From the NCBI GenBank assembly GCA_038087875.1, contig JAXLNO010001028.1:1-64000 (forward strand): a stretch of 64,000 nt of DNA, read 5' to 3'. This document shows, in pieces, positions 28,378 through 49,770 of this stretch. The DNA comes from Malacoraja senta. Lineage: Eukaryota. Every line of letters starts with the position of its first letter. Within the stretch, counting starts at the first letter, position 1. The notes under the pieces are model-generated. The model made no database searches and had not been told where the DNA came from. It was given only the letters and a program-made list of their open reading frames with translations. The position numbers and the translations under genes are program-made.

Positions 28378-28429
28378 ATGCTTCTTTTTACCTTACTCAA
28401 CACTTACGGTGTGGCCACTGTCTCCTCTG
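28378..28429 (+). CDS. MHC class I-like leader exon (MLLFTLLNTYGVATVSS-D)
   Basis: ATG, hydrophobic signal-peptide-like 17 codons, phase-1 gtaagc donor; G+AT joins in frame to a1. Confidence 0.7.
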
Positions 28430-28729
28430 GTAAGCAATGCTCCTTCTACTTGTGAACTTTGAGGAAACAACAAAACTGATTCTATTTACTGTTGCACAGT
28501 CCCTGTGTTTGCCCTGGGTACATTGTCTTGGATGTATTAATTGAATGATTGAATTGAATGTATTAATAATTTTGGGTAACGGTCTTTCCTTAGTTGTAAA
28601 GGCTCCTGTGGGAAGTTATATACACTATGGTTACCTTGGCAATCCAATGAACAGAGGAACTGAATACAGGTAAATAATGAACATAGAACATAGGACAATA
28701 CAGCACAGGAGCAGTTCCTTCAGTCCTTC

Positions 28730-28763
28730 AGTCTGAAGAAGGGTCTCGACCTGAAACGTCACC
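28730..28763 (+). ncRNA. Minimal hammerhead ribozyme motif in MHC intron 1 (sense)
   Basis: AGT-CTGAAGA-A-GGGTC-TC-GACCT-GAAAC-GTC-ACC; G.U wobble at the base of stem II. Confidence 0.55.
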
Positions 28764-29459
28764 CATTCCTTTTATCCAGAGATGCTGCCTGACCTGCTGA
28801 GTTACTCCAGCATTTTGTCTACCTTCGCCCACAATGTCTGTGCCGAACAAAATAAACTAATCTCCTCTACCTGTATGTGATCTGTATCCGGCCATTCCCT
28901 GCCTATCTATGTACCTATCTAAAAGCCTCTGAAATGTAACTGTTATATCTGCCACCACCATCACCACCACTGGCAGCGCAGTACAGGTGTCCACCACCCT
29001 CCACATAAAACAACTTGCTCCGCTCATCTCCTTTGAACATTGCTTCTCCAACCTTAAAGTGATGTTCTCTGGTCTTCAACATTTCCACCCTGGGAAAAAG
29101 GTTCTGGCTGTCCACTCTGTCTGTGCCTCTCACCATGTTATGCACTTTCATCAGGTCTCCCTTCAACCTCCAGTATACAAGAGAAAACAATCCATGTTTG
29201 TCCAATCTGTTCTTGCACTAATACCTCAGAGAGAATTCAGGTAAACCGGTGATGTGCACTTTCAATAAAGAAGTGACTTCTGCATTAGTAGGTGTTCCAC
29301 CTCTCCAAGATTTCCTCAGCTGGTGTTAGACACCCACATGATGGTAAAATTCAGCCTGCATCAAATGACAAATCAATGTTGTGTTAATGTTGTTGCCATC
29401 TTGTTGTTTGTTGCATGCTTCCTGTACTGCAGACCCTATCCATTACATCACCACCACTT

Positions 29460-32330
29460 CCATATAACCATATAATCATATAACCATTACAGCACGGAAA
29501 CAGGCCATCTCGGCCCTTCAAGTCCGTGCCGAACACTTTTTTTTTCCTTCCCCCTTCTTTCTTCTTACTTCCCCCTAGTCCCATCTACCTGCACCCAGAC
29601 CATATCCTTCCATTCCTTTCCCGTCCATATACCCATCCAATCTATTTTTAAAGGATAAAATCGAACCTGCCTCCACCACTTCCACTGGAAGCTCATTCCA
29701 CACAGCTACCACTCTCTGAGTAAAGAAGTTCCCCCTAATGTTCCCCCTAAACTTCTGTCCCTTAATTCTCAAGTCATGTCCCCTTGTTTGAATCTTCCCT
29801 ACTCTCAATGGGAAAAGCTTATCCACGTCAACTCTGTCTAACCCGCTCATAATTTTAAAGACCTCTATCAAGTCCCCTCTTAACCTTCTGCGCTCCAAAG
29901 AATAAAGCCCTAACTTGTTCAACCTTTCTCTGTAACTTAGTTGCTGAAACCCAGGCAACATTCTAGTAAATCTCCTCTGTACTCTCTCTATTTTGTTGAC
30001 ATCCTTCCTATAATTAGGCGACCAAAATAGTACACCATACTCCAGAATTGGCCTCACCAATGCCTTGTACAATTTTAACATTACATCCCAACTTCTATAT
30101 TCAATGCTCTGATTTATAAAGGCCAGCACACCAAAAGCTTTCTTTACCACACTATCTACATGAGATTCCACCTTCAGGGAACTATGCACAGTTATTCCTA
30201 GATCACTCTGTTCAACTGCATTCCTCAATTCGCTACCATTTACCATGTACGTCCTATTTTGATTTGTCCTGCCGAGATGTAGCACCTCACATTTATCAGC
30301 ATTAAACTCCATCTGCCATCTTTCAGCCCACTCTTCCAAATGGCCTAAACCTCTCTGTAGACTTTGAAAATCTACTTCATTATCCACAACACCACCTATC
30401 TTAGTATCATCTGCATACTTACTAATCCAATTTTCCACACCATCATCCAGATCATTGATGTACATGACAAACAACAGTGGACCCAACACAGACCCCTGAG
30501 GCACCCCACTGGTCACCGGCCTCCAACCTGACAAACAGCCATCCACCATTACTCTCTGGCATCTCCCATTCAGCCACTGTTGAATCCATCTTGCTACTCC
30601 ACCATTAATACCGAACAATTGAATCTTCTTAACCAACCTTCCACGAGGAACCTTGTCAAAGGCCTTACTGAAGTCCATATAGACAACATCCACTGCTTTA
30701 CCGTCATCAATTTCGCTAGTAACCTCTTCGAAAAATTCAAGAAGATTAGTCAAACATGACCTTCCAGGCACAAATCCATGTTGACTGTTCCTAATCAGAC
30801 CCTGCTTATCCAGATGCTTATATATATTATCTCTAAGTATCCTTTCCATTAATTTGCCCACCACTGACGTCAAACTAACAGGTCTATAATTGCTTTGTTT
30901 ACTCTCACAACCCTTTTTAAACAACGGAACAACATGCGCAGTACGCCAATCCTCCGGCACTATTCCTGTTTCTAATGACATTTGAAATATTTTTGTCATA
31001 GCCCCTGCTATTTCTACACTAACTTCCCTCACTGTCCTAGAAAATATCCTGTCAGGACCTGGAGACTTATCCATTTTCATATTTTTCAAAAGTGTCCGCA
31101 CCTCCTCTTATTTGAATCTCATAGTTTCCATTGCTACTCTGCTTGTTTCCCTTACCTCACATAATTCCATATCCTTCTCCTTGGTGAATACCGAAGAAAA
31201 AAAATTGTTCAATATCTCCCCCATCTCTTTTGGCTCTGCAGATAGCTGTCCACTCTGACTCTCTAATGGACCAATTTTATTCCTTGTTATCCTTTTTCTA
31301 TTAATATAGCTGTAGAAACCCTTTGGATTTACTTTCACCTTACTTGCAAAAGCAACCTCATATCTTCTTTTAGCTTTTCTAATTTATTTCTTAATATTCT
31401 TTTTACATTCTTTATACTCCTCAAGCACCTCATTTACTCCATGCTGGCAATAATTATTGTAGATCTCTCTCTTTTTCCGAACCAAGTGTCCAATTTCCCT
31501 TGAAAACCATGGCTCTTTCCAATTTTTACTATTTCCTTTCAACCGAACAGGGACATAAAGATTCTGTACTCTTAAAATGTCACCTTTAAATGTCCTCCAT
31601 TTCTCTACTACATCCTTCCCATAAAACAACATGTCCCAATTCACTCCTTTTAAATCCTTTCGCATCTCCTCAAAGTTAGACTTTCTCCAATCAAAAATTT
31701 TAACCCTAGGTCCAGTTCTGATCCTCTCCATAATTATATTGAAACTAATGGTATTGTGATCACTGGACCCGAAGTGCTCCCCAACGCCCACCTCCGCCAC
31801 CTGCCCTGTCTCATTTCCTAACAGGAGGTCCAGCACTGCCCCTTCTTTAGTAGGTACCTCTATGTATTGCTGCAAACAACTATCCTGCACACATTTTACA
31901 AATTCCAAACCATCCAGCCCTTTTACAGTATGTGTTTCCCAGTCTAAGTGTGGAAAATTGAAATCTCCCACAATCACTACCTTGTGCTTACTACTAATAT
32001 CTGCTATCTCCTTACATATTTGCTCTTCCAATTCTTGCTCCCCATTAGGCAGTCTATAATACACCCCTATATGTGTTGCTACACCTTTCCCATTTCTCAG
32101 TTCCACCCAAATAGCCTCCCTAGACGAGCCCTCTACTCTATCCTGCCAAAGCACTGCTGTAATATCTTCCTTGACAAGCAATGCAACACCCCCACCTCTT
32201 GACCCTCCAATTCTATCACACCAGAAGCAACGAAATCCTGGAATATTTAGTTTCCAATCACAGCCCTCCTGCAACCATGTGTCACTGATCGCCACAACAA
32301 CATACTTCCAGGTGTCAATCCAGGCTCTAT
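29460..32330 (-). mobile_element. Near full-length CR1-type LINE ORF2 (APE plus RT), frameshifted, in MHC intron 1
   Basis: APE motifs (AISDTW, GGGVALLV, VGDFNFP, LDLLL, SDHN) in 31384-32334; RT in 29575-31101 (YADD); (catataac)n tail. Confidence 0.93.
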
Positions 32331-33004
32331 CCACGACTTCCCCAGAAGACGATAATGAGATTTAAGAAGCTTGAGGATAGGCACGTGGATATGTAGGGAC
32401 TTGAGGGATATGAATCATGTACAAGCAGTTTAGTTTAACTTGACATCATGTTCGGCACAGACATTGTGGCTGAGCTCTAACCCATTACACCCTTAATGAA
32501 CAAAAATATATCAATCTAAATCTGGAAATTTTCAAGTGGGCGACATATTCAACAGATTACAGAATCGAGAACCAGAAGACATAGGTTTAAATTGAGGGGG
32601 GGGGGAGATTTAATGGGAATCTGATGAGCAATTTCTTCCCACACAATGCTTCCTTTCTAACTATTCTGACAATCGTGAAGGCTTGGAGATTACAAACCTA
32701 CTCATCCTGAAAGTTTAATCCCATTGTTATCAGATGAAAGTAAATATAAAATGGTGATTCCCCTGTTGAAATAATAACATATAAAACAAAAATCCTTGGT
32801 TGTGGAGTGTTTTGGGAAGTCACGTGGATTTTATCATTACTGTATTCCACTAGCCTTCTTATGTTTCTCCTGGTAACACTGAAACAGACACTTCTAACTC
32901 TCCCTTTGGGGCCCCTTCTCACCTCACTTTGACACTGAACTTTGACACTGTCTGGTGTGCTGCATGGAAACTTTATCACAGAACAAATACTGCTTATTCA
33001 TGTA

Positions 33005-33545
33005 GAAACAAGAAAATGCAGATGCTGGTTAATACACATAAAATGCTGGAGTAATTCAGCAGGTCAGGCAGTATGTCTGGAGAACATGGATAGGTGATGT
33101 TTCAGTTTAGACATCAGTTTAGATGTGTAAGAAGGAACTGCAGATGCTGATTTAAACCGAAGATAGACACAAAAAGCTGGAGTAACTCAGCGGGACAGGC
33201 AGCATCTCTGGAGAGACGAAATGGGTGATGTTTCGCGTCTAGACCCTTCTTCAGACTGGTGATGCAGATGCTGGTTTACACCGAAGATAGACACAAAAAG
33301 CTGGAGTAAATCAGGAAGTCAGGCAGCATCGCTGGAGAAAAGGAATAGATGGCGTTTCAGGTCAAGGCACTTCTTCAGACAGAGTCGGAGGTATATCTTT
33401 TATTAATTTGTTCTATGTACCTTTTCATATCGCTTGGTTCCCTGTCTCCTGATTCTCAGTCTGAAGAAGGGTCTCGACCCGAAACGTCACCTTTTCCTTT
33501 TCTCCGGAGATGCTGCCTGACCCACTAAGTTACTCCAGTATGTGT
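33005..33545. repeat. Cluster of three tandem Penelope-end arms plus one inverted arm
   Basis: Repeated gcagatgctgg...gatagacacaaaa...gctggagtaactcagc...ggcagcatc units followed by the reverse arm carrying the intact hammerhead motif. Confidence 0.75.
33458..33491 (+). ncRNA. Minimal hammerhead ribozyme motif in MHC intron 1 (sense)
   Basis: AGT-CTGAAGA-A-GGGTC-TC-GACCC-GAAAC-GTC-ACC; core intact. Confidence 0.68.
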
Positions 33546-33926
33546 CGAGTTTCAGTTTAGACCCTGTTTATTATAGTCTGCTCCGACCCCACCCCCACCC
33601 CCCACCCCACCCAAGCCTTGATAGTCGGGACTCATCAGTAAGGTCTTCTTTACACTTACTGTTACAGAATCCCAATGTCCTCATAAGTCAGAAGTGCCCC
33701 ATTCCATGCAGAGATTTCCCACCAGATGGGCATTTCAGGGTTGCAGCTCATAGAGATGGTGCCTATGAGGACCTGGACTCAATCCCGATCTCTACTACAA
33801 CCTGTGTGGCACTTTTATTCTTTCCCTGAAACCATGTGTGCTTCCTCTGGTTATTCCAGTTTCTCCCAATATTCCAAAGATGAGAGGCTGAGAGGTAAAT
33901 TGGCCAGTGTGAATTGATCGTACATA

Positions 33927-35455
33927 CTGTGACCTCCATAATGTTTCGGACAAAGACCCATCATATATTTATTTGCCTCTGTACTCCATAATTTGAGATT
34001 TGTAATAGAAAAAAATCACATGTGGTTAAAGTGCACATTGTCAGATTAAAAAAAAGGCAATTTTTTAAACATTTTGGTTTCACCATGTAGAAATTACAGC
34101 AGTCAATTTACATAGTCACAAAATACATAGTCTGCCCCATTTTAGGGCACCATAATGTTTGGGACACAGCAATGTCATGTAAATGAAAGTAGCCATGTTT
34201 AGTATTTTGTTGCATATCCTATGCATGCAATGACTGCTTGAAGTCTGTGATTCATGGACATCGCCAGTTGCTGGGTGACTTCTCTGGCGATGCTCTGCCA
34301 GGCCTGTATTGCAGCCTGTGCTTGTTTTGGGGGCTAGTCCCCATTCAGTTTTCTCTTTGGCATATCAAAGGCATGCTCAGTTGCGTTCAGATCGGGTGAT
34401 GGTCTTGGCCACTCAAGAATTAACAATTTTTTAGCTTTGAAAAACTCCTTTGTTGCTTTAGGATCATTGTCTTGCTGTAGTATGAACCGCTGGGCAATGT
34501 GTTTTGAGGCCAATGTGTTTGAACTTGAGCATATAGGATGTGTCTATACACTTCAGAATTCATTATGCTGCTACCATCAGTAGCTGAATGGTCAACAAAG
34601 CTAAGTTAGCCAGTACCTTCAGCAGCCATACATGCCCAGCCCACAACACCCCCACCACCGTGTTTCACAGATGAGGTGGTATGCTTTGGATCTAGGGCAG
34701 TTCCTTCTCTCCTCCATACTTTGCTCTTGGCATCACTCCGATATAAGTTAATCTTTGTATCATCTGTCCAGAAGACCTTTTTCCAGAACTGTGGTTGCTC
34801 TTTTAAGTACTTCTTGGCAAACTGTAACCTGGCCATCCTGTTTTTGCGGCTAAACAGTGGTTTGCATCTTGCAGTGCAGTCTCTGTATTTCTGTTCATGA
34901 AGTCTTCTGCGGACAGTGGTCATTGGCAAATCCACACCTGACTCCTGATGAGTGTTTCTGACCTGTCAGTCCCTTTGCGATTAGTAAAGGATTGGGGTTT
35001 TGTCTTTATTATAGAGAGAAGTCTTCTGTCATCAGCTGTGGAGGTGTTCCTTGGCCAGCCAGTCCCTTTGCGATTAGTAAGCTCACAGTGCTCTCTTTCT
35101 TCTTAATGATGTTCCAAACAGTTTGATTTTGGTAAGCCTAAGGTTTGGCTGATGTCTCGAACAGTTTTATTCTTGTTTCTCAGTCTCATAATGGTCTCTT
35201 TTACTTTCATTGGCACAACTCTGGTCCTCCTGTTGATGAACAGCAATAAAAGTTTCCAAAGGTGATGGAAAGACTGGAGGAAAGACTAGATGCTGAGTTC
35301 TCTTATACCTGCATTAAGGAGGCATTTAAATACCCCTGAGCAATTACATACATCTGCGAAGCCATGTCCCAAACATTATGGTGCCCTGAAATGGGGGGAC
35401 TATGTATAAACACAGGTGTAATTTCTACATGGTGAAACCAAAATGGGCAAAAAAT
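33927..35455 (-). mobile_element. Tc1/mariner transposon remnant with long inverted repeats
   Basis: TVRRRLHE...ARCKP...WTDDTK...VKHGGG transposase; inverted repeats ~34070-34168 and ~35365-35445; TA before the left end. Confidence 0.85.
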
Positions 35456-36042
35456 GAATACATAAGTTTAAAATGAGGGGGGAAAGATTTAATAAGAACC
35501 AGAGGCATAGCTTTGGTGGGAGTACTGAATGAACTGCCGGAGAAGGGAGTTCAGGCAGGTACTATCGCAACATTTAAGAAACATTTAATCTGGTACATGG
35601 ATAGATAGGTTTAGAAGGATATGGGCCTCCTCAGACAGCCGTGGAGCCCACGTCAATGGATATTTCTCAGGTGGATATTGACAGATTCTTGATCAGTATG
35701 GGTGTCAAGGGTTATGGGGCGAAAGCAGGGAATGTGGTTGAGAGGGCGAGATAGAGCAGCCATGATTGAATTAGGCCATTCAGCCGTAGGCCCTGATTCC
35801 CTGCTGTATGACTCTTTGACTTTACCTCTCTATGATTTTATAAAATCTCCTTGACGTTGTCCATTTTCTTAATATAATAAAATATTCTTTGAATTTTGGA
35901 ATATTGTAACTAGTAGGCTGTATCGACATGATAGATAATAATAGATCTTTGAAGATGGGAAGCAATCCAATAGGATCATTCAATACCTCGACCACAATTG
36001 GTGGAATAGGTATCAGAGCCCATCTAGCCAACTCTTGTAGAA

Positions 36043-36362
36043 GGCTCAGTGGTGCAGCATTAGAGATGCTGCCTTATCGCCCTTACAGCACCAATGCCCA
36101 GGTTGGATCCTGACTACGGGTCCTGTCTGTATGGAGTTTGTACATTCTCCACCTGACCGGGTGGGTTTTTCCTGAGATCTTCAGATTCTTCCCACATTCC
36201 ATGACGTACAGGTTTGTAGTTTAATTGGCTTGGTGTAGAATGTAAATTGTCCCTTGTGTGTGTAGGATAGTGTTAGCGTGTGGGGGTTGCTGGTCAGTGT
36301 GGACTCAGTGGCCCGAAGGGCCTGTTTCCATGCTGTATCTCTAAGCTAAAAACTAAACTAAA
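36043..36362 (+). mobile_element. HE1-like SINE, full length, ~190 bp upstream of the a1 exon
   Basis: Head, body, tail ending (ctaaa)n. Confidence 0.8.
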
Positions 36363-36552
36363 GGCTCCTGACACAAATTGTCACCTGATCATTGATGCTG
36401 CCTGCCCCACTGAGTTCATCCAGCACTTGCATCTGCAGGTCCTTGTGACTCCCTTATTCAAAGTTATTGTATTGTTATCAGTTTTAGCATTAATAACTTA
36501 GTTATTTTCAGTGAATGATACAATCATACTTATTTTTGTTTATGCATTGCAG

Positions 36553-36821
36553 ATTTTCACCATCTTGCATTTTACTACCTGTTGAACCATGGATTGAGTG
36601 TGCTGCCTGAGTACAGTATGGTATGAGTACAGTACAGTTGGATGACCTCCAGATAGCATATTTTGACAGCACACTAGAGCGGGCTATTCCCAGACAGCGA
36701 TGGATGGCCCAGTCTTTCCCGCAGGATCAATGGGATTCAATGGCCATCACAGTTGCAGGTTTTCATGGGATTGTCAGAGGAAATGCTGAGATAGTCTACC
36801 AACAGCAACATGGTATCTCGA
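36553..36821 (+). pseudogene. MHC class I-like a1 exon with 8-bp frameshift
   Basis: ttgcag acceptor, gtaagt donor; DFHHLAFYYLLNHGLSVLPEYSMV [TGAGTACA] VQLDDLQIAYFDSTLERAIPRQRWMAQSFPQDQWDSM... Confidence 0.85.
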
Positions 36822-37074
36822 GTAAGTGTCGTGACCGGACCTGGGGTAGACACCCAGTGATGGCACAAATGGATTTTGTTTTAGTTTTGTTGCTGTCACA
36901 TGATTCTCTGATACACTTTTTTTGCATGTTAGTCAATCACATCAAAGAAAACTATTCATAAATACAATCAAACCAAACTCGTACAATAGGTAGAGCAAAG
37001 AGTGCAGAATGTAGTTCTCAGCATTGTAATGTACCAGTGCCAGAGACAAAGTCCAGTGTCTACAATGGGGTTGA

Positions 37075-37500
37075 GGTGAACCCTAGCATAAGGGAGGACT
37101 GTTCAGAAACCTGATAACATAGGGGAGGAAACAGTTACTGAGTCTGGTGGTGCACGCTTTAATGCTTACGTACCTTCTGCAGGAAGAAGAAGGAATGACC
37201 AGAGCGGGATGAATCTTTGATTATGTTGTCTGCTTTCCTGAGCCAGTTGAAATACAGATGGATTCACTGGTGGGGAATCATGTTTGTGTGATCGATTGTG
37301 CTACATCTCCACCTCCCTGCCATTTCCAGCGGTATTGGGCAGAACTCTTTCCAAACTAAGTTGTGATGCAACCTGTCAGTGTGCTTTCTATGGCACATTT
37401 GTAGAAGTTTGTAAGAGTCATTGGAGATGCCGCATTTCCTTAGTCTCCTGAGGCAGTAGGGGAACCAGAAACTCTCAACCTTTTTCACTTCAGCACCATT
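37075..37500 (-). mobile_element. Rex1/Babar-like LINE RT C-terminal remnant
   Basis: YCLRRLRKCGIS...NFYKCAIES...ITTWFG-type sequence across broken frames. Confidence 0.65.
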
Positions 37501-38568
37501 GATGCTGTTTCAGACATTTACTCCATCACATTTTGATAGAGACACGGCCCATCGTCTATATTTAATGTGTCCTAACTGCTGAACACCCATTGATAACAGT
37601 TGGCTGGTGATAGTCTCTTTATGGGTTAAGCATTTGATATTTAACACCAGTAAAAAGTGGATGGATTGGATCATCTGTTTTATTGGGCTGGAATGAGGGA
37701 GAAACCATAGTTTATTTATAGCCTGATCACCTAGAGATGGGACCTTGATTAAGCTGGTTGATGGTGACTATGATGTATTCCCTCAACAATAATATTCTGT
37801 TAATCCAGCATTCCCTCAATATTGGCAACAATCCACAGAGAGTGTAGCAATCCCACACAGTGCAACAGCCTTGATGTACTTCCCATCTGCATTGCCTTAA
37901 CCTTCAGACTGACCTGTTCACTGTATAACATTGCCCATCTGACAATGCACTCCTTCCTCTGTTCTTTATGTACGAAAGTGCAGAATCTGAGTTCTACCCT
38001 TCTGACACAGCAAAACTTCTTTAGTGTTACATCCGCAACAGTAAAGCTTCCCCCCTCAACACTTGAGGTTAGTCCATGCCCTCAGTATATAGACCATGGG
38101 TCATTGAGTCACACATCATGGAAACCGGCCCTTCTGCTCACTGAATCCACATTGATCATCATTTGTACTAAGATGGAGTCACAGCAAACTGCAGATGCTG
38201 CCAATCTGAATTAAAAACAAACAGGAGGAACTCAACGAGTCAGGCAGCATGCTGTGGAAAAATGGACAGAAAACATATGAGACCAGGACCATTTAGAGTG
38301 ATGGAGTAGGGTGGAGAAAGCTGGAAAATAAAAGTAGTCTGTGTAGGATACTGTTAATGTGCGGGGATCACTGGTCAGTGCGGACTCGGTGGGCCGAAGG
38401 GCCTCTTTCCGCGCTGTATCTCTGAGCTAAACCTGCTCCTATGCTGTACAGCTCCATGTTGTGTTCTGTTATGCCTGTTTGTACCATGCTGAGAACTGAT
38501 TTGTAAATTGCCTCTCCCTTCCATCCACTCTCCCCAACACAAATCCTCCACCCCTACCTCAGCCCCAG

Positions 38569-38844
38569 CTGTTTGCTTTGTGCAGGGTTTCTGCGGCTGT
38601 GAAGTGGACAGTGACAATTCCACTGATGGGTTTGTCAGACTGGGTTATGATGGGGAGGATGCCTGTGCTTTTGACAAGGACAGAATGCGCTGGATTGCAC
38701 TACGTCCAGATTTCCAGATGCTAGCAGATCGGTGGAACGTCAACACCTTCATGAACAAGTATTTTAAAGATCTCCTGGAGAAGGACTGTGTGAAGTGGCT
38801 GCGGATATATCTGGAGTGTGGACAAGAAGCACTACAGAGGAGAG
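38569..38844 (+). CDS. MHC class I-like a2 exon
   Basis: ccccag acceptor, gtacac donor, 276 nt; VQGFCGCE...GYDGED...W...DCVKWLRIYLE with the canonical C101/C164-equivalent pair. Confidence 0.92.
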
Positions 38845-38944
38845 GTACACGACGTAGGCACTCTGACTGATGGGCCAGAGGATATCCTCTGGATAGATCA
38901 GGTGGGAAATATCATGCACTTCAGGCTGTCACTTGAGTAATTAT

Positions 38945-39235
38945 TTAGTTTAGTTTAGTGATACAGCGCGGAAACCCACCGAGACCGCACCGAGCAGCCA
39001 TGCCCGCACACTAACACTATCCTACACACACTAGGGACAATTTGCATTTATACCAATCCAATTAACCTACAAATTTGTACGTCTTTCGAGTGTGAGGAGA
39101 AACCGAAGATCTCGGATAAAACCCACGCAGGTCACAGGGAGAACGTACAAACTCTGTAAAGACAAGCACCCGTAGTTAGTAACAAACCCAGGTCTCTGGC
39201 GCTGTAAGGCAGTAGCTCGACCGCTTCGCCACCCT
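38945..39235 (-). mobile_element. HE1-like SINE
   Basis: Reverse-orientation head/body/tail. Confidence 0.8.
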
Positions 39236-40046
39236 GTTCTACAACGTGGGTATCAGTAAATTGTCTGGCAACGTGCCTCTTAGATGGAGCCAGTGGGTAG
39301 GAAGTGCAAGTGAAAGATAAATATTGTACCAGTGTCCTCTATCCACAGTCATATAGATATTCAGGAAATGGAGGGATATGTATCTTGGTCTTATGTTTAG
39401 CATTGACCTTGTGCCTGAAGTGTCTGTTGCTGCGCTGATCAGAAACCCAATCAGATTCTCTATTTGCCTCTATTACTCCTTGGGATGGTGACATCCAATT
39501 TCCAACAGTTCTCTGGTTGAAGAACTTCTTCCTCCCATTCCCTCTTGGAATATTTAGTGTTATTATTCAGCTGAGATTCATGAACAAGTAGAAGCAATCA
39601 TGTCTACAGTATCAATCCCAATGGTGAGTTATACTCCTCCATTGGGCCTGCATTCCCCTTACATCTGCGCTGTCAGTTCAAGTCTGGAGCTAAGATAAGG
39701 AGCATGTCAGTGATATTAAAACTAAATGTTTTGTTGTTTTGCCAGAAATGCAAAATGAAAAGAGAAAAGGCTGTAAACTGTGTGCAAGATAGAACTGCAG
39801 ATGCTGGTTTACACTGAAGATAGAAGATGTTGGAGTAACTCAGTGGGTCAGATAGCATCTCTGGGCATTCCTTCTCTCCAGAGATGCTGCCTGACCTGCT
39901 GAGTTATTCCAGCATTTTGGGTCTAGGCTGGAAACTTTGTTCAGCTGGAGAAAAAACTGATTGGGAAAGAGGTGAGTTGCAGTGATCTTACAATTGAAGG
40001 CTTTTGTTCATGTCTTCACTGATTCTGACGCTTCCTACACTTGCAG

Positions 40047-40319
40047 AAACCCCTGAGGTGTTTATTGGGATTAAACGTGATGGGTCACAATCACTGAGAC
40101 TCTCCTGCCTTGTCACAGGCTTCTACCCACGGGCCATCGATGTAACGTGGCTGAGAGATGGTGAGGGAGACCACGAGTCTGAATCCAGTGATCTGTTGCC
40201 CAATTGGGATGGGACTTACCAGCTGAAGAATACAATTCAACTGAGTAGAGAAGATGTGGCAAAATTCTCCTGTTACATTGAACATGCAACTCTGCTGCAG
40301 GGAGTCAATGTTCCACAGG
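40047..40319 (+). CDS. MHC class I-like a3 exon (C1-set Ig)
   Basis: ttgcag acceptor, gtaagt donor; LSCLVTGFYPRAIDVTW...LLPNWDGTYQ...FSCYIEH. Confidence 0.93.
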
Positions 40320-40419
40320 GTAAGTGGCAAGTCAATGAGGCTGATCACTTGAGAGAATAAACCTCCTGGACTGAGATAACAGCCTCAACACACTCTTAAC
40401 TAAGCTGTGCATTTAGATT

Positions 40420-41060
40420 TTAGACTTTAGAGATATGGTGCAGATACAGGCCCCTCAGCTCACTGAGTCCTCGCTGAACAGTGATCATCCCGTACATTTA
40501 CACTAACCAACACACTGGGGACAATTTACAATTTTACCTAAGCCAAGTAACCTTCAAGCCTGTATGCCTTTGGAGTGTGGGAGGAAACCGGAGCACCCGG
40601 AGAAAACCCACGCAGTCACAGGGAGAACATACAATGTCCTTGCAGACAGCACCTGTAGTCAGGATCAAACCCAGGTCTCTGGTGCAGTAAGGCAGCAGCT
40701 CTACCGCTACGCCACTGTGCCACCCATCATTAATTTGTGGTTATCTAATTGCCCAGAATTATTGATAGTCAATGGAATGTGGTTTAATTTAAGAGATACA
40801 GCGCAGAAACCGGCCCTTTGGCCCACGAGTCTGCGTCAACCAGCGATCCCTGCACACTTACATTATCTTACTTATTAGGGGACAATTTACAATTATACCA
40901 AGCCAATTAACCTACAAACCTGTATGTCTTTGGACTGAGGGAGGAAACCGGAGATCCAGGCAAAACCCACGCAGGTCCGGGGGAGAAGGTACAAAACTCT
41001 GTACAGATGGGACCCGTAGTTAGAATTGAACCGGGTCTCTGGCGCTGTAAGGCAGCAGTT
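40420..41060 (-). mobile_element. Two tandem HE1-like SINEs
   Basis: Copies at ~40420-40720 and ~40780-41060. Confidence 0.8.
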
Positions 41061-42404
41061 CCACTAAGTGGGCAAAGCAGAGCCAAATGGAATACAGTGT
41101 AGCAAGTGTCTGGTTTTACATTTTGGCAGTCGGAATAAAGACATAGACTATTTACTAAATGGGGAGAGAATTCAGAAATCTGAGCTACAAAGTGGGAGTA
41201 GTAGTGCAGGATTCCCAAATAGTTCATTTGCAGATTGAGTCAGTGGTAAGTAAGGCAAATGCAATGCCAGCATTCATTTCGGGGGGACTAGAATATAAAA
41301 ACAATGATATAATGCTGAGTATTTATCGGGCACTGGTGAAGACACATTTGGAATATTGTGAGCAGTTTTGGGCTCCATATTAGAAAGGATGTGCTGGCTT
41401 TGGAGAGGGTCCAGAGGAAGTATGTCCTGGGGATGATTGATTTAACGTATGAGGAACGTTTGAAGTCTCTGGGCTTCTACTCGTGGGAATTTAGAAGGAT
41501 GAGGGGAAAATCTCTGAAACCTACCAGTTAATGAAAGTCCCAGTTAGTGGATGTGGATAGGATGTTTTCAGTAATGGGAGAGTCTAGCACAGCCTCACAA
41601 TAAAAATACGTACTTTCAAAATGGAGATGAGGAGGAATTTCTTTAGTCACAGGGTGGTGAATCTGTGGAATTCATTGATACAGACAGCTGTGTGGGTCAA
41701 GTCATTGCATATTTTAAAGCAGAGAATGATAGGTTCTTGATTAGTACGGGTGCCAAAAGTTACAGGGAGAAGGCTGGAGAATGGGATTCAGAGGTAAAAA
41801 AAGATCTGCCATGACTGAATGGTGGAGTAGACTCAATGGACTGAAAGGCCAACTTCTGCTCCAATGGTAAAAATTATTCTTATGTCACCCTTAACTCACA
41901 CATCCAAATGTAGGAAGCAAGATAGGCTGATCCTGGCCAAGGTCTCTTATCTTATTTCTTGGGCATCTAGCTAATTTTTTAATAGTAGTTAGTTGCACAA
42001 AAGGCCAATAGTGGTGCCACATCCAACCCCATTATCAGGCTGAAGTAGCAGCACCTGTTCTGTAGCTGACTTATTTGTTCCAGTCAAGACCTCTGCAAAT
42101 ATCTTCACACCAGGGCCAAGCTGACATGGTTAAAATTGCTGGTCAGTACAAATAGACAGTAGTGTTAATGTCTGAGTGTGCGTGTGTGTGTGTGTGCGCT
42201 CATGCGTGTGAGACAGAGAGAGGGGGAGGGGGAGGGAGAGAAAGAGAGTGTGTGTGTGTGAGAATATCAAACTCTCAGATATTGAAATATCAGCAAAGTT
42301 TAAAACCTTTGAAGTTTTATCAACTATAAATGGGTTCACTTTTATTTGCTAAAATAACAATGGTCAAGATAAGAAAATAGCCTTGTTGACCTCTACACTG
42401 CAAA

Positions 42405-43245
42405 TAGACCAGCAGGGGGCGCTGACCTGTGTGCGGCTACCCAGCCAGCAGCTGTCTGTCCTTTCACCTTTATTTTTTTTATTTTAGTCAGTAAAGTGTT
42501 TTGTTTTGGAGGTCTAGACTTTTTTGTGTGGGGGGGGGGAGGGGGAAACTACCTTTCAGGGTCCCTACCTGGCTGGAGAGGCAGCTTTTCTCCGGGCTGC
42601 AGCTTCGACCCGTCCTCGCGGCCTACCAGTGGGCCTGGAGCGGCGTTTCCTGTCGGGGACCGCCCAGAGCCTCGGCTTCGGCACAGCGCTGGAGCGCTAT
42701 CGCGGAGCGGGCGGTGCCTTGCCCGGGTCGCCGCGCTGGAGCTCCGGTGAGCTGAGGATCGCTGGAGAAAACATCGCGGAGCTGCGGGACTGTGGAGCGA
42801 CCAGCTGAACTTTACACCGGGAGCCTGGGATCTCTAGATGAGAGCGCCAGTTGTGGAGCTCCAACCGGCGCGGCCTTGTTGGCTTCGGAAGCCGCGGCCC
42901 CCAGTGCGGAAGCGGCCGTTCCAGGGTTCCGAGGCCGCTGGGAGGACTCTCCCGACGCTGGAGCAACATCACCCGGCGAGAACGGCCTGGAACATCGGGC
43001 CTCCGTAGAGGCAACTGTGGAGGCCTCAATGGGCCCGACTATGGGTGAACTGGGGTTGGGGACTGGACTTTGTGCCTTCCCTCATGGTGGGACCCATTGT
43101 GGGGGGGTGTTCAGTGTTAAGACTATCTTGGTGTTGTGTCTGTATTCTCTCTCTTTTTTGTGTGCTGCATAATGGCAAAAAGCATTTCACTTCACTACAC
43201 CCGGGTGTATGTGAATGTGACAAATAAAATATCTTGAATCTTGAA
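42405..43245 (+). mobile_element. GC/CpG-rich non-coding retroposon-like insertion in MHC intron 4
   Basis: ~830 bp CpG-rich body ending in gtgacaaataaa...(tcttgaa)n LINE-type tail. Confidence 0.5.
42409..42422 (+). promoter_or_regulatory. Candidate CTCF site
   Basis: CCAGCAGGGGGCGC, 14/14 to the CCASYAGRKGGCRS consensus. Confidence 0.5.
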
Positions 43246-43499
43246 TCTTTATTTATGACATATGTTTGATTCTTTAAATTCATAATTAAATGCTGCAGAT
43301 AAAATCTCAACGCTAATATGAACTTCAAAGATTTTTCATTGATCTATTTAAACATCCATCGTCTGGACAATTACATAAATCTAAGACTTTGTTACTTTTT
43401 ATTTAGATGTGAACAATGCTAGTTTAATGTAGATAATAAAATCATTTCAAAGTCATAATTGATCAATAAATGTTTAAAATGAACTATATATGCCAACAG

Positions 43500-43726
43500 A
43501 GATGGCAGCGAAAGAAGATATAAAGATTAGGATCGTGACTGGAGCTGTAATCGTTCCTCTCTTTCTCCTGGGGATCATCCTTGGAATTGGTTGCTGGAAG
43601 AAGAGGAAAAAGATAAAACCTTTCAATGAACAGGGACCAGCTGACAACAGCAGAGACCAGGAGACGACTGCAGTGACCATGAAGCACAATCAACTTCCAT
43701 TGGGATGCAGAGGTCTACCGGAATGA
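43500..43726 (+). CDS. MHC class I-like connecting peptide/TM/cytoplasmic exon
   Basis: caacag acceptor in phase 1; IVTGAVIVPLFLLGIILGIGCW followed by KKRKK stop-transfer and a tail to TGA. Confidence 0.75.
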
Positions 43727-44781
43727 TGCCTGGATTAGTGGGGTATTAGCCACAGGGAGAAGTTGGACACACTGGACAGTTGGATTGTTTTCTCTGGAAT
43801 GTCGGGGATTGAGGGGAGACCTGACAGTAATATATCAAACTGGGAGGAGTAGAGATAGGGTAGACCATCAGACTTTTTACCCAGGAAGGAAATATCAAAC
43901 AAGAGCAGGTATAGCTTTACAATGAGTGGCAAAGTTTAAAAAAGATGTGCAGGACAAGTGTTTTACGCCAAGGGTGGCGAGTGACTGGAATGTGCTGCCG
44001 GGGGTGGTGGTGGAAGCAGATATGATAGTGGCATTTAAGAGACTTTTAGATAGGCACATGTATATGCAGGGTATGGATGGATATGGATTATGTGCAAGCA
44101 GGTAACAATTGGTCTTGGCATCATGTTCGGCACAAACATTGTGGGTCAAAGGGCCTGTTCTTGTGCTGTACTGTTCTATGTTCTATGCTCTTTATTGTAT
44201 CAATGCTGACTGATGGCTTTACATTCAGCCATTAATTTTTCAAGTGCTGTCTTCACTGCAGTTAAAGGTCTGTCTCACGAATCTGCGGTCATTGGCGGCG
44301 AAACGGGAAGAATCTGCCGCCATAGACCGCGCACTCGTGAGAAAGAACAATTCCCGGGCCGTGCGACGGTGTTCCCAACACCGCGCGGTGCAAAAATAAA
44401 ATCGACAATGTCGAAAACACAATACTCACCGCACAACCTCCACCAGTGATGCACGAGTGCGCACGGCCGCTCGCACGGCCCGCCGCCAGTATGGCTCGAG
44501 CGCCGTGCGTCAAGCCTCCACTGCCACAGCCTCCGCCAGTGAGGCACGTGCCGCCGCCAGTGACGCACGTGTGCTGCACGGCCGCTGGCACAGCCACCGC
44601 TGCAGCGCCGCGATCTGGACAGCTGCCGCCACAACCCATCAGATTCAAAATGACGTCATCGCAGTCGGTCCGCCCTTTTTCTTTGCTGTTCACGTCCAAA
44701 CCACGCGAGATCTGAGACTTCAACAGTGTAGCATTTTTACCGCGTTTTTCAAACGGAGTATTTTGACAGTTGACTAGCAAC

Positions 44782-46640
44782 ATGGGGAGAACAAGGAGTG
44801 TGAAGAAATCGCTGCAGGATAAAGTACAGTATTCTAGTATGGGTGCTAATAAAATTCAGGTGCTGGAGGGTCCAGCCACTGGCCCTGCCCCTGCCCCTGC
44901 CCCTGCCCCTGCCCCTGCCCCTGCTTCATTACCTGTCCCATCTCCTGCCCCATCTCCTGCCTCAGCTGCTTCCACATCTGCTGCCCCATCTGCCTCTCCA
45001 TCTGCTGGTCCATGTCCTACTCCAGCTTATGTCCCTGGATGGGTGTGGAACAGGTCTGGCTCACAGCCATATAATTTTTCCCGAGAGCAAGAGGGGGACC
45101 TGGTGGAATGGTATCAGTCCCACCATGAGCTGTACGATAAGACCAACCGTGATTTTAGGAACAGGGGTCTCCGTAACCTCATAATTGGAGAAAAGGCGAA
45201 GGAGTTCCCTGACTGCTTTTGTAAGTACATATCTTTCAGTTTATCTACATTTCTGTGTTTGTAATTGAGGTTCAAATTCATATTATAATTTGCTCAACAC
45301 TTATCTTCATTTATGCTATCTTTTCACAGATGACCAACTGTGCCAATGGCTAAAGAGTCAGAGGACACGGTTCGGCAAAATATCACAAGGTCTTGGCAAG
45401 TCTGGCTCTGGCAGTAGGAAACTGACTGACAGAGACCAGTGGATATATGACAAATGGGGGTTCGTCCGGGACCACATTGTAAGAGTGCACACGAAGGAAA
45501 GTTGCAGGAAGGTAGGAACTCAGAAAATTATGTGACAATAAATATTAGTTGGGAAGTCAGTACAAAACACTTTTAACAATGATAACTTGTTCACTTTCCC
45601 TGCTACGTCCGGATGGTCTTGCACATGTATGATACGCATTCACTTTCTTCTAGTGTACTGTGGGTGCATCAACGTGCGCGGACTCGAGTGAGGGTGAGCC
45701 TGATCCGCTAGAAGGACCTTCACATGGACCATCCGGGTCATGCACTGCGGTAGAACTGCAGCAGCATGCAAGACGGAAGCGGGTCAGCACAACTGCGTCA
45801 GATAGCGAGGTGCCTGTCCAAACTCTGCAACGGGACATGTTCAGGGATGTAAGTGCTTTTGGATTACCCATCATCAAATCTCTTTCACTCCGCCCTACTT
45901 CCACGTTTCTCCATCTCATCCCACAATACAATTATCATGATTGTACTCTCTTGTTGCAGATCATGGAACAGGCAAAGACAACGTCGGGCATGATCACCTC
46001 TTTCTCACAGCCAAGGACGTCCCATGAGAGAGTTGTGCATGCATATGCAATGTTCCTCAGGGAGGAGATGTTCTTAATCCCTGAGGAAAATTGGCAACGT
46101 TATAGCATGGAGGGATTGTCCTTGGCAAGGGCGCACAGACTTCCGCAGCCAGTAAAATATTTAAATCAAAGTTCATTGAAATTAAAAAAGTTTTAAATTA
46201 ATGCCGTCTATGATTCATTTACTACTGTTTTCTTTGTGTTGCAGAGTCCGATAAGGCATATGCCATTAGTGCCACTGCAACAAAGGAGGATGCCACCACA
46301 ATATCCCCACCAGGTACACTGTGAAACATTTTTGAGTCTTCAGCCTGACTCATGATTTTCTCTAACACACAGCTTGTGAAAGGTTGTGATTTGTTTTATA
46401 TGATTTGTTTGGCACCGATACATATTGATACGCTTATGTGTTTTGCCCACAGGCAAGGATGGAATACCGTCCTGTGACATACCCCTGGATGGCAGCCCCC
46501 CCCCCACTATGTCAGTGGACACACCCCACCGCAACATAGTTCATCACGTGGCATGGATAGTCTAGGGGAAGGCGAATTCCATGTACAATTTGAGGTTCCC
46601 GAAGATGGCACAAACTCCAGCACCGATGACGCAGACGTAT
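44782..46640 (+). CDS. Harbinger Myb/SANT (MADF-like) partner protein; exons 44782-45220, 45330-45511, 45654-45848, 45960-46151, 46245-46313, 46453-~46640
   Basis: LVEWYQSHHELYDKTNRDF...Y-DQLCQWLKSQRTRFGKI trihelix; all five introns GT-AG with consistent phase; last exon reads through only if the C run at 46496-46505 is 9 rather than 10. Confidence 0.75.
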
Positions 46641-47088
46641 ATAATTAATAAGAATGACATGTGCCGTAGGAGTGACGTTGCCCCCAAAATTCACTGTTGT
46701 GCCTGCTTGTGTGTTGCACATTACCGTTCAATTCACTGTTTTCTCACGACGTTATTTGTTTGCTTTCACTAATGAACAATGTTCTGTTGAATTGCTTGTT
46801 TTTCAATATGTTAATTGTTTCCACTAAATAAACAGTTTAAATTTAATATAGTATTGTGGAAAAAAGTGTCTGTTAATCGCGGCGTAGATCTCATATGGAA
46901 ACAACCTGAAATGATGGAATGCATCTCACATACAAAATCATTGATTTATTAGAGAAATAAAACACAAACAGGCATAGAATAGCATTGAATTACAAAAAAT
47001 TTTCATTATAAGCCATGAAAATAATACAATGGCATTTAAGCCCTTTCAAGATCAGGCAACTTTAAAATAGGTGATGTAGGTGGTACTA

Positions 47089-48331
47089 TTAACACAGATT
47101 CAATAATTTCGCAATGTAAAACCATCCATCAACATACATAGATCGCACTTTTGTAAGATCTGGGGCCTTCATGATCGGGTACCTCTGCCGTGAAAACACA
47201 ACCCTGACATCCCCTGTTTGCTTTTGATCCTCAAAACACATTGTCCTGGTGCGGATCAGGTTATGGAGGACACATGCCGCGTAGACAATGGCCTGCACAT
47301 TCTCGGGCTCCTGCTCCATTGTTGTAAGCAGGCATCTGAATCTGCTAGCAAGGATACCAAAAGCATTCTCCACTACCCTCCTAGCCCTGGACAGCCTGTA
47401 ATTGAAGATCCTTTGCTCCCTTGACACCCCCCCTGTGAGGGTATGGCTTCATCATCCATGGCCTGAGTGCAAAGGCATCATCACCAACCAGTGCGTAGGG
47501 GATGTCAGGGATGTCAGGGTTGTCTTCTCCAGGCAGAGGTTCTGGATCCGGAAGGCCTGCTCTCCCTTCTTCCAATGCTTGCCCAAGGGAGGTCTCTCTC
47601 CAGATCCCTCCATCTGCGGCACTGCCAGGTGTGCCCACATTCACAAACATGAAGTTGTAGTTTGCATCTACCACAGCTAACAGCACGATGGAATGGAACT
47701 TCTTGTAATTAAAGTACACAGAACCTCCCCCGGGTGGACACCGGATGGCCACATGCTTCCCGTCAACAGCCCCACATGTGTGCAGGAAGTTCCATCTGCT
47801 TTGAAAGCCGTGCGCCACACTCCTCCACCCGTCTGGTGTAGTTGGGCAGTCAATAAGCTCATCATATGTTTTGTTGATGGCATCACACGTCTCTCGGACT
47901 ACACCGCTGATGGTGTTGTGAGCCACACGGAAGTTGTACGACAGGCTCTTGTAGGAATCCCCTGATGCAAGGTAGCGGAGGGTGATGGCTAGGCGCAGGC
48001 CTGGTTCCAGTGACTTCCGCATGACGGTGTCCATTTTCTGCAGTAGAGGTCCGACTCGTGTCTTGAGCTCCTGAAACAGGTCAGGCGGGATCCTGGTGAA
48101 ATTTCTAAAGGCAGCATCATCTACCCGCTGCAGATCCGTCATCATGGTCTCATACTGGCCCAAAGTAGGTCTCATCAGGAACAAAGGCCTCATCCACACA
48201 GACCTCTTCCTGGGCTTCTTCTTCATAACCTTCTTTGTTGAACTGCTGCACGGATGACCTGCAACCATGATGGCTGCTGCTAAGAGAAGATTATGTTGGT
48301 GTAGCAGCAATGCAATGTCAATGTCTTCCAT
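47089..48331 (-). CDS. Harbinger DDE transposase (HARBI1-like), frameshifted at the C7 run 47427-47433
   Basis: [50 protein letters not shown]. Confidence 0.88.
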
Positions 48332-49540
48332 TGTGCAGTAGTTTACAGGTCCTAATCGAGTTTGCTGCAAGATTAAGAGAGAATAAGTGTGAATATTCCA
48401 AAAAATTTTACGTGTGGAGAGTTGACAGGTCTTTGTGGGCCAAAGGACCTGTTCCTGTGTTATACTGTTCTATGTTCATGGTCTCTCTAAGAAAATGGTT
48501 CTCAGATTTACAAACTCCATGCAGACAACCACGAGTGACCACTGATTTATTTTTGTATATACATCATCCTATTGTTATTACTAACTTTGTTATTGCTGGT
48601 CTACAATTGTTAGACCCTAACCCCTTTGTAAAATTGACTTTTATAAAACACATTTCTATAACACATGTTGTTTTAAGAACAAAAAATAGCCAGCGACTTC
48701 TGTTTACCTGAAATAAAGATGGCGTCAGGCTCGAGCTTTCCAGACTCTGCTCCAAATGGCGTCAGGCCCGAGCTTGACTCCTCTCAAAATGGACGTCCCC
48801 CTCCCTCCTTCCCTCCAAATATGCTTATTTCCTTAAGAATGTAAACATGTTCTACTCAACTGATGAAATAAAGATCTTTTGGGCAATTCTAAAGCTAACT
48901 ATAAGGCCTGTCTCACGAGTCTGTGGTCATTTATAAAATAGACTTTTATAAAACACATTCCTTTACTTTTTGTTTACCTGAAATAAAGATGGCGTCAGGC
49001 TCGAGATTTCAAGACTCTGCTCCAAATGGCGTCAGGCTCGAGCTTGAAAAAAAAATGAACGTTCCCCTCCCTCCGTCCCTCCCGTCAAAGTCCGGGATCG
49101 CATGCTCGTTCGACAGGCCGTGCGATGATCACCCGACGTACGTGCAACAAAAGCTTCTGGTAAATCAACATTTTTTTTAACCTACCGCAAGCACGTGGGA
49201 CCCGCCCTATTTGATTCACTCGGCCCCCGCGCAGCATCCGCGCGATGCTCCGGTGGATAGGCTCGACGCTCTCGCCGTTGCCGCGCGGACCTCGCTACCG
49301 TCTACACCGCGCTTCACCGCCGATGACCGCAAACAGGTAAGACACGGCCTTTACCCTGTGATTCCAAAGTCATACATTGCGCCACATTTTGGAATAAAAG
49401 GTCGCCCATTTGATTGATTGATACTTTATTACCATATGTGTCATGTCACAGTGAAATTCTTTGTTTTGCATGACATACAACGAGTCACCATGTATAGGGT
49501 GTCGACACAGTTACAAAGTAATCATTACAGTCCCCAATGG

Positions 49541-49770
49541 TCCCTCTTTGTTCTCGGCAGCCCCTCCATGTTGGGTTCACCTGTGTTATCAACGGCCCCC
49601 CAACCCCGGGACCATCTTTGTTCTCGGCAGCCCCTCCATGTTGGGTTCACCTGTGTTATCAACGGCCCCCCAACCCCGGGACCATCTTTGTTCTCGGCAG
49701 CCACTCCATGTTGGGTTCACCTGTATTATCAGCCCCCCCCCCACCCCGAGACCCTCTTTGTTCTCGGCAG
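49541..49770. repeat. 70-bp minisatellite, ~3.3 copies
   Basis: TTCTCGGCAG recurs at 49551, 49621, 49691, 49761. Confidence 0.9.

Follow-up and report, generated by a model that had tools for sequence, protein, structure and literature searches.

A disabled skate duplicate in an elasmobranch MHC-Ib lineage sister to UGA, whose intact members are probably non-peptide presenters

Introduction

Can a skate MHC class I gene with a strongly altered groove still give rise to a class I molecule, to which lineage does it belong, and what might the groove of that lineage hold? These questions are raised by a gene in the window, that is, the whole stretch of 64,000 nt that was analyzed (positions 1 to 64,000 of contig JAXLNO010001028.1, assembly GCA_038087875.1). 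An earlier note, made from the sequence alone, had described the gene as non-classical and had proposed that it encodes a binder of non-peptide or non-canonical ligands, or possibly represents an unrecognized lineage. We consider it probable that the gene is a disabled duplicate in an elasmobranch MHC-Ib lineage that is sister to UGA, and that the intact members of this lineage are non-peptide presenters.

Results

Gene structure and closest relatives

The window contains a five-exon MHC class I-like gene on the forward strand (28378-43726), with the ATG at 28378 and the stop codon TGA at 43724-43726. All exon boundaries carry AG/GT and all introns are in phase 1. The closest relatives are two Leucoraja erinacea paralogs, the intact XP_055486430 (P0001, locus L001) and the broken XP_055486496 (P0020, locus L003). 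The word paralog treats the window as Leucoraja erinacea, while its assembly is listed as Malacoraja senta. The locus has the following features:

28378..28429, + strand: leader (signal peptide) exon, MLLFTLLNTYGVATVSS, with the phase-1 donor G/gtaagc, read from the sequence
29459..32334, - strand: LINE in intron 1, with ORFs of 508 and 316 aa (endonuclease, reverse transcriptase)
36553..36812, + strand: alpha-1 exon, 260 nt, reading frame disrupted
36623..36637, + strand: disabling lesion, 15 nt (ATGAGTACAGTACAG) versus 7 nt (AGCAATG) in the intact paralog L001
38563..38844, + strand: alpha-2 exon, 94 codons, intact, with the C101-C164 pair and an NST sequon
40047..40319, + strand: alpha-3 exon, 91 codons, intact C1-set Ig domain
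43500..43726, + strand: connecting peptide, TM segment and cytoplasmic tail in a single exon, stop at 43724-43726

The start and the stop agree with the earlier description, and the gene has the hallmarks of the MHC class I superfamily, namely, a platform, a C1-set domain, a TM segment with a tail, one exon per domain, and phase-1 introns. Pfam recognized MHC_I in alpha-2 (2e-16) and the C1-set in alpha-3 (5.5e-15), and in alpha-1 MHC_I (PF00129) matched the second half only (0.0094). The disulfide cysteines of alpha-2 (C101-C164) and of alpha-3 are both present, and alpha-2 has the additional Cys99, Cys124, and Cys174. The beta-2-microglobulin contact motifs Q96, GYDGED, and LPNWDGTYQ were all found again, as were GFCGC, DAC, LEC, and the NST sequon. 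The same is true for the single TM and tail exon and for the lack of tyrosine in the tail, which is 42 aa long after the TM segment. The leader exon is identical in the intact paralog (L001:100-150), and 12 of the 17 signal peptide residues match those of the Pristiophorus and Heptranchias orthologs. A tblastn search of the window with the gene itself, UGA-like and classical-type proteins found no second class I or UGA-like gene.

A disabling lesion in the alpha-1 exon

The frameshift in alpha-1, which had been noticed before and regarded as repairable, is real, but it is not a simple slip. Compared to the intact paralog, which is 90% identical, it is a complex insertion with a stop codon: in the pairwise DNA alignment the lesion amounts to net +8 nt and duplicates the upstream GAGTACAGTA. 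It generates a TGA at 36624-36626, and the length of the exon is no multiple of three. Frame A reads FHHLAFYYLLNHGLSVLPEYSMV and is then terminated by the TGA, and frame B restarts with LDDLQIAYFDS... and ends with QQQH. The reading frame open across all five exons that characterizes a working lineage member is missing, and because the frame is shifted and a TGA arises in alpha-1, the window copy cannot make the class I molecule. A rescue by a cryptic intron was considered, since the excision of 17 nt, GTATGAGTACAGTACAG (36621-36637), restores the frame (243 nt); it was rejected, because vertebrate introns are all far longer than 17 nt.

The remaining four exons have stayed open and show mild degradation at most; the window copy is therefore most likely a pseudogene of fairly recent origin. 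The dN/dS ratio versus L001 is 0.56, and three residues of the window copy, H59Q included, are private changes among 109 columns that are otherwise invariant; at the sequence level, these values indicate relaxed constraint. With just one exon damaged out of five and no more than three conserved residues changed, the inactivation could also be a null allele instead of a fixed pseudogene.

The opposite reading would be that the gene is functional, that the frameshift is an assembly error or the null allele of one individual, and that skates normally express this copy. The open leader, alpha-2, alpha-3, and TM/tail exons with their good splice sites fit this reading, as do the alteration of no more than 3 of 109 invariant positions and a dN/dS below 1. 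The evidence for the insertion comes from a single assembly. However, a typical long-read error is a homopolymer slip, unlike this lesion, which is a complex replacement of 7 by 15 nt that copies adjacent sequence and brings an in-frame TGA. In addition, a second copy of the family (L003) was broken independently, the altered H59 is a groove residue that is otherwise invariant, and no RefSeq protein for the window copy was found in the protein searches, although those of the L001 and L003 copies turned up. Taken together, we regard a functional gene as unlikely. Neither the frameshifted alpha-1 ORF nor the alpha-2 ORF had an exact-sequence match in other assemblies.

Duplicates in skates and orthologs in sharks and rays

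The intact paralog is collinear with the window (85-92% DNA identity including introns), and its five exons are open. In contrast to the window, it lacks the intron-1 LINE (RVT_1 1e-34, Exo_endo_phos 5e-13) at the corresponding site, where the collinearity is broken. The broken paralog has a stop at the codon of Cys164, and no alpha-1 exon was found at its locus. In total, at least three diverged paralogous copies of this MHC-Ib gene were counted in the little skate.

Orthologs are present in about 15 sharks and rays with identities of 53-74%, mostly one per species, and RefSeq names them "MR1-like". With the paralogs included, members of the lineage are 53-91% identical to the window copy (clade support 100/99). 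These members (among them XP_055486430 of Leucoraja erinacea, LOC127585976 of Pristis pectinata, and XP_038671277 of Scyliorhinus canicula) have in common with it the signal peptide and the organization into exons, the NST sequon, the TM segment with the tail, and the groove residues F7, Y9, Y22, T66, G69, N77, V95, G97, C99, L143, R146, Y155, F156, L159, L160, D163, and Y171. The window copy differs from them by the +8-nt insertion with the stop, Q instead of H59, the LINE in intron 1, and an insertion of 5.5 kb directly downstream.

The little skate, and apparently Heptranchias as well, has several copies of the gene, some of them dead, and in most other sampled species it looks single-copy. 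Duplication together with dead copies shows birth-and-death turnover within the lineage. The intact paralog P0001 lies on one contig with a UGA-like gene (XP_055486429). The coordinates of the sawfish (Pristis pectinata) ortholog are those of LOC127585976, between brd2 and rxrb, which is labeled MHC-Ib in the supplement to the study that mapped the MHC-Ib cluster (Verissimo et al., 2023; PMC10751288).

Phylogenetic placement

In an IQ-TREE phylogeny of alpha-1 to alpha-3, the window gene was joined with P0001 (100/99) within a lineage of shark and ray orthologs (100/99). This lineage is sister (100/98) to a 9ch4-like lineage, a UGA-like clade that is itself supported by 100/99; the title of PDB entry 9ch4 is "shark nonclassical MHC class I, UGA". 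The window gene is outside the UGA clade, with 36-38% identity to it, and inside the ortholog clade, and its groove string equals that of P0001 except at position 59. The sole CD1 sequence in the tree (CD1b) is on a branch of 2.4 substitutions beside chimaera sequences and apart from the lineage, and its placement is unreliable.

Could the gene nevertheless represent a formerly unrecognized class I lineage, apart from everything described, as the earlier note had suggested? With solved and with classical class I molecules the gene shares just 25-37% identity, and the searchable papers contain no name for the lineage. Cluster look-ups also returned automatic RefSeq or UniRef names alone. However, the gene nests at 100/99 among the annotated orthologs of about 15 species, which bear the same substitutions. 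Furthermore, its sister group, UGA, already has a name, and the sawfish member of the lineage has been marked as MHC-Ib (PMC10751288). An unrecognized lineage is thus highly improbable; the lineage of the gene is already annotated in other elasmobranch genomes, and the gene is not an orphan.

Neither a name for the lineage nor a description of 9ch4 was found in the searchable literature, which excluded the papers defining UDA and UEA, and therefore the missing name is weak evidence. The name UDA, reportedly that of a published reference lineage of Almeida et al. 2020, is on no database protein among the cluster look-ups. UDA is single or low copy and located in the MHC-Ib cluster, and the copy number and map position of the lineage are compatible with UDA (PMC10751288).

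A hydrophobic and conserved groove

HLA numbering was transferred to the groove residues from a ray sequence of the classical type, aligned without gaps. The window copy has F7, Q59, Q84, L143, R146, W147, L159, and Y171, and the sequence QQQH instead of an N86 sequon. The substitutions reported before could thus be re-derived, and the alignment confirmed the retention of W147 and Y171. Among the residues that anchor the peptide termini (Y7, Y59, Y/R84, T143, K146, W147, Y159, and Y171) only these two remain and six of eight are replaced, so that the window copy lacks the anchor set of a classical (UAA-type) molecule. The change of Y59 to Q holds for the window copy, but it is no trait of the lineage: Q59 is private, and 15 of 15 other members have H59.

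The hydrophobic fraction of the groove is 0.61-0.68 in the lineage, with 2-4 charged residues, versus 0.44-0.56 and 6-12 charged residues in classical-type sequences; some multicopy shark class I genes reach fractions in the lower part of the lineage range. Within the lineage, identity is 0.83 in the groove, 0.73 at the other positions of alpha-1/alpha-2, and 0.65 in alpha-3. The groove is more conserved than the remainder of the molecule, whereas the classical pattern is the opposite. A model of the paralog's platform had a pLDDT of 92 and Z-scores of 23-25 to solved class I chains.

A further possibility is that the intact members have kept a non-canonical form of peptide binding that dispenses with the usual anchors of the termini. 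The retained W147 and Y171 would allow this, and the predicted platform fold, which is of high confidence, is as close to peptide-binding class I as it is to MR1. However, the hydrogen-bonding anchors are replaced throughout the lineage by F7, H59, Q84, L143, R146, and L159, and a groove that is poor in charges and more conserved than the remaining molecule is unlike that of peptide presenters. Peptide binding by the intact members is therefore very unlikely in our view.

Comparison with UGA, MR1, and CD1/UFA

Among the fold matches, UGA (9ch4; skate and ray relatives XP_055486429 and XP_032898133) ranks first (Z 24.6, rmsd 1.8 A, 178 residues). It shares with the lineage the motifs LNHG, AGFHG, VPRQxWMA, and NxYFKxLLEKDC, and the residues G69, G97, Y155, F156, L159, and D163. 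However, UGA retains Y7, Y59, K146, and the NQT glycan site, it has F99 where the lineage has C99, and the hydrophobic fraction of its groove is lower (0.49-0.54). In the sequence alignment, alpha-1 of the lineage is about three residues shorter than that of UGA, toward the C-terminal end of the helix.

The RefSeq name raises the possibility that the gene is the shark and ray ortholog of MR1 and presents small vitamin-B-type metabolites. MR1 chains are indeed the best PDB sequence match to the alpha-2 exon (5e-17), behind UGA they rank near the top by both sequence and fold, and at about 30% identity they resemble the lineage in having a groove of the non-polymorphic, highly conserved kind. 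However, the Schiff-base lysine K43 of MR1 aligns with Ala in the window copy and with Thr, Ile, or Cys in the orthologs. In the tree MR1 falls with tetrapod class I, and a tree constrained to unite it with the lineage and UGA is worse by 47.6 log-likelihood units and is rejected, at a borderline level, by the AU test (p = 0.045). The fold Z-score of MR1 and those of class I from chicken, duck, and fish lie within 1 of each other. With no equivalent of K43 and a position outside the MR1 clade, MR1 orthology is disfavored, and we regard it as extremely unlikely.

CD1/UFA and the lineage have in common a hydrophobic groove that is poor in charges, together with the loss of the peptide-terminus anchors, and for the alpha-3 exon CD1c was the top-scoring PDB match. 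Unlike CD1/UFA, the lineage retains the C101-C164 disulfide and class I-type lengths of alpha-1 and alpha-2, and in contrast to CD1 the tail of the window gene showed no YxxPhi sorting motif.

Discussion

The groove of the lineage is hydrophobic and conserved, without six of the eight peptide anchors and without the lysine of MR1, and a non-peptide, probably lipid-like ligand of the intact members is therefore likely. This assignment is based on sequence composition and on a personal communication in a review, which concerns the sister lineage UGA; UGA and UFA have been reported as lipid binders (PMC12562908). The earlier proposal of a non-peptide or non-canonical binder fits the lineage, with its replaced anchors, its groove, and UGA as its sister, but not the window copy, which as a probable pseudogene would bind nothing.

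According to the explanation that we prefer, the window gene would be one of at least three diverged paralogous little skate copies of a conserved elasmobranch MHC-Ib gene. The intact copies would encode type I membrane glycoproteins that pair with beta-2-microglobulin and have a very hydrophobic groove, near-invariant between species, from which the peptide-terminus anchors have been lost. They may display one conserved lipid-like or small hydrophobic ligand instead of a repertoire of peptides, and an innate-like lymphocyte receptor would be the recipient. In the window copy, the additional 8 nt in alpha-1 would shift the frame and lead to the TGA after mature residue 24, and no molecule would be made.

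A more specific scenario is tentative. Cys99, which would be unpaired and lie on the groove floor, is invariant across the lineage, and the lineage, still unnamed and as old as the split of sharks and rays, with UGA as its sister, could use its near-invariant hydrophobic groove to offer a single lipid-like or thiol-captured ligand to innate-like T cells, while duplicating and decaying in skates.

Taken alone, the window gene adds little: it is disabled, and it duplicates a gene for which many shark and ray genomes have an annotation. The lineage, in turn, places beside UGA in the MHC-Ib cluster a second class I molecule that is hydrophobic, very conserved, and devoid of anchors, and it supports the view that non-peptide presentation in the style of CD1 or MR1 is as old as the jawed vertebrates.

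Gene structure and the alpha-1 lesion

The window contains a class I gene that is most likely an inactivated duplicate and adds one more broken member to an already annotated lineage of sharks and rays. It consists of five exons:

28378-28429, + strand: leader exon (assigned from the sequence)
36553-36812, + strand: alpha-1 exon, 260 nt
38563-38844, + strand: alpha-2 exon (Pfam MHC_I, 2e-16)
40047-40319, + strand: alpha-3 exon (Pfam C1-set, 5.5e-15)
43500-43726, + strand: connecting peptide, TM segment and tail in a single exon (stop codon 43724-43726)

Each acceptor ends in AG, each donor begins with GT, and the junctions are uniformly in phase 1, which is a general rule for class I genes. 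The tail has 42 amino acids and no tyrosine. The alpha-1 exon, of which the second half gives a weak Pfam MHC_I match (0.0094), has a length that is not a multiple of three. Its first frame reads FHHLAFYYLLNHGLSVLPEYSMV and then meets a TGA at 36624-36626, and the remainder (LDDLQIAYFDS...QQQH) lies in a different frame. Pairwise alignment with the intact paralogue XP_055486430 of Leucoraja erinacea placed the lesion at ATGAGTACAGTACAG in the window versus AGCAATG in the paralogue, a net insertion of 8 nt in which GAGTACAGTA, found 16 nt upstream, is repeated. The frameshift reported in the earlier note is real. As the usual long-read error is of the homopolymer type, unlike this complex change, we read the insertion as a real mutation, seen in one assembly; exact look-ups of the frameshifted alpha-1 ORF and of the alpha-2 ORF in other assemblies gave no match. 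Excision of a 17-nt GT...AG stretch as a cryptic intron would restore the frame, but this was rejected because it is far too short for an intron.

Three tblastn queries (the spliced product, a classical-type protein and a UGA-like protein) revealed no further class I exons in the 64-kb window, and the remaining large ORFs that were scanned contained transposon domains or had no Pfam match. The other features are:

29459-32334, - strand: LINE in intron 1, long ORFs for an endonuclease (316 aa) and a reverse transcriptase (508 aa) (Pfam RT and endonuclease)
42130-42340: (CA)n/(TG)n-rich microsatellite in the intron preceding the TM exon
42500-43170: GC-rich block after the microsatellite, same intron
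44264-49752: 5.5-kb insertion relative to the paralogue, immediately downstream of the gene
44275-45264: GC-rich stretch with overlapping ORFs on both strands, within this insertion
47381-48370, - strand: Harbinger-type DDE_Tnp_4 ORF, inside the same insertion
within the window: hAT fragment (Pfam match)

The LINE looks young; it is missing at the matching site of the 90%-identical paralogue and thus inserted after the duplication. By eye only, intron 1 also appeared to contain a Tc1-like ORF. Two hammerhead ribozymes had been proposed within this intron, at 28730-33491; the entire window, scanned against Rfam at gathering thresholds, matched none of its families.

Paralogues and decay

When the alpha-2 exon was searched without a profile against 1.8 billion representatives, one protein had 95% identity and one 87%; all others had at most 44%. 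The two are the RefSeq proteins XP_055486430 and XP_055486496 of L. erinacea, encoded on unplaced contigs of GCA_028641065.1. The locus of XP_055486430 has five open exons, and its collinearity with the window extends from the leader past the stop codon, with 85-92% DNA identity including introns and with different transposon insertions. At the locus of XP_055486496 (JAMYXN010000412.1:53058-77289) a stop replaces the codon of Cys164, no alpha-1 exon could be located, and the alignment shows a gap of one residue near the end of alpha-3. The RefSeq model bypasses the stop and the gap through odd splicing, and XP_055486496 is probably a pseudogene product. The three copies are therefore diverged paralogues and not haplotype copies, and at least two of the three seem to be dead. 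Between the window and XP_055486430 dS is 0.078, dN 0.043 and dN/dS 0.56, and the window copy has private changes at only 3 of the 109 columns invariant among the other 15 members, a pattern consistent with function having been lost fairly recently.

Phylogenetic position

A tree of 68 alpha-1 to alpha-3 sequences was calculated with IQ-TREE (LG+C20+F+G4, PMSF; supports are ultrafast bootstrap/SH-aLRT). The window gene grouped with XP_055486430 (100/99), nested in the batoid members (100/98) and in the whole lineage of 13 rows (100/99), which was sister to a second clade of sharks and rays (100/98). This second clade closely matches PDB entry 9ch4 in sequence, motifs included ("Crystal structure of shark nonclassical MHC CLASS I, UGA"); therefore, the lineage is the sister of UGA. 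For the platform model of the paralogue (pLDDT 92), the closest fold match was likewise 9ch4 (Z 24.6, rmsd 1.8 A over 178 residues, 37% identity), and the contig that encodes XP_055486430 also encodes a skate UGA-like protein, XP_055486429. On long branches, and with a support of only 90/67, three Callorhinchus genes and one CD1b sequence joined this side of the tree. RefSeq labels the lineage "MR1-like"; MR1 was placed with tetrapod class I, and constraining MR1, the lineage and UGA into one clade cost 47.6 log-likelihood units, with a borderline AU p of 0.045.

With the intact paralogue as query, orthologues were retrieved from Pristis, Mobula, Hypanus, Pristiophorus, Heptranchias, Scyliorhinus, Stegostoma, Hemiscyllium, Mustelus, Cetorhinus and Chiloscyllium; cluster members add Carcharodon, S. 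canicula, Hemitrygon and a second Mobula species. The orthologues, mostly one per species, have 53-74% identity, and beyond them identity falls to 36-38%. The signal peptide is conserved from skate to sharks. For Heptranchias perlo (sharpnose sevengill; cluster P0164), RefSeq contains 11 or more proteins of the lineage, which share over 90% identity and are distributed over seven or more contigs, and the lineage would not be single-copy everywhere, unless these entries are uncollapsed haplotigs. The sawfish orthologue, LOC127585976, maps to chromosome 34 (13,956,125-13,977,896), and Verissimo et al. 2023 (PMC10751288) give it the label MHC-Ib in their supplement. Its position, with brd2 at 13.0 Mb on one side and rxrb at 15.5 Mb on the other, falls within the MHC-Ib cluster described in that study.

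The known elasmobranch lineages are UAA, UBA, UCA, the single-copy UDA, the multicopy UEA, UFA and UGA (PMC10751288, PMC12562908). The database entries of relatives and clusters that were looked up carry no lineage names. UDA would be compatible with the low copy number and with the location within the MHC-Ib cluster, and the lineage may equally be one without a published name. In either case, the suggestion of an unrecognised lineage is not supported in the form proposed, because the gene groups tightly inside an annotated lineage with the same substitutions.

The groove and its putative ligand

HLA numbering was placed on a classical-type manta-ray sequence via conserved motifs, and the same alignment columns were read in the window product. 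This recovered every residue and motif listed previously: F7, Q59, Q at 84, L143, R146, W147, L159 and Y171, QQQH at the position of the N86 sequon, Q96, GYDGED, LPNWDGTYQ, an NST sequon, and cysteines at 99 (GFCGC), 124 (DAC) and 174 (LEC). The change from Y59 to Q, although present in the window copy, is not lineage-wide, as all 15 other members have H59. Cys99 (codon 38589-38591) lies on the groove floor, adjoins the canonical Cys101 and is invariant in 16 of 16 members, whereas UGA has Phe. Within the lineage, Cys124 is confined to rays and skates, and the orectolobiform sharks have an additional Cys at position 45, which class I structures place close to position 99. A free groove thiol might matter for ligand capture.

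Groove composition at 41 positions, compared between groups
Group; hydrophobic fraction; charged residues
This lineage; 0.61-0.68; 2-4
UGA-like; 0.49-0.54; 3-6
Classical-type; 0.44-0.56; 6-12

Fixed across sharks and rays are F7, H59, Q84, L143, R146 and L159, and likewise G69, G76, G97, C99, Y155, F156, L160 and D163, while the position of the MR1 lysine is occupied by A, T, I or C. Within the lineage, pairwise identity declines from 0.83 in the groove to 0.73 in the remainder of alpha-1/alpha-2 and 0.65 in alpha-3; the pattern is reversed in classical-type sequences (0.43 versus 0.60). UGA and UFA bind lipids that resemble those bound by CD1d, according to a personal communication in a review (PMC12562908). 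The interpretation in the earlier note thus stands in part: the groove lacks six of the eight classical anchors and is hydrophobic and conserved, and UGA is the sister, but the lineage had already been annotated. From groove composition, conservation and the report on UGA and UFA we infer that the intact members of the lineage present one conserved hydrophobic ligand, which is probably lipid-like.
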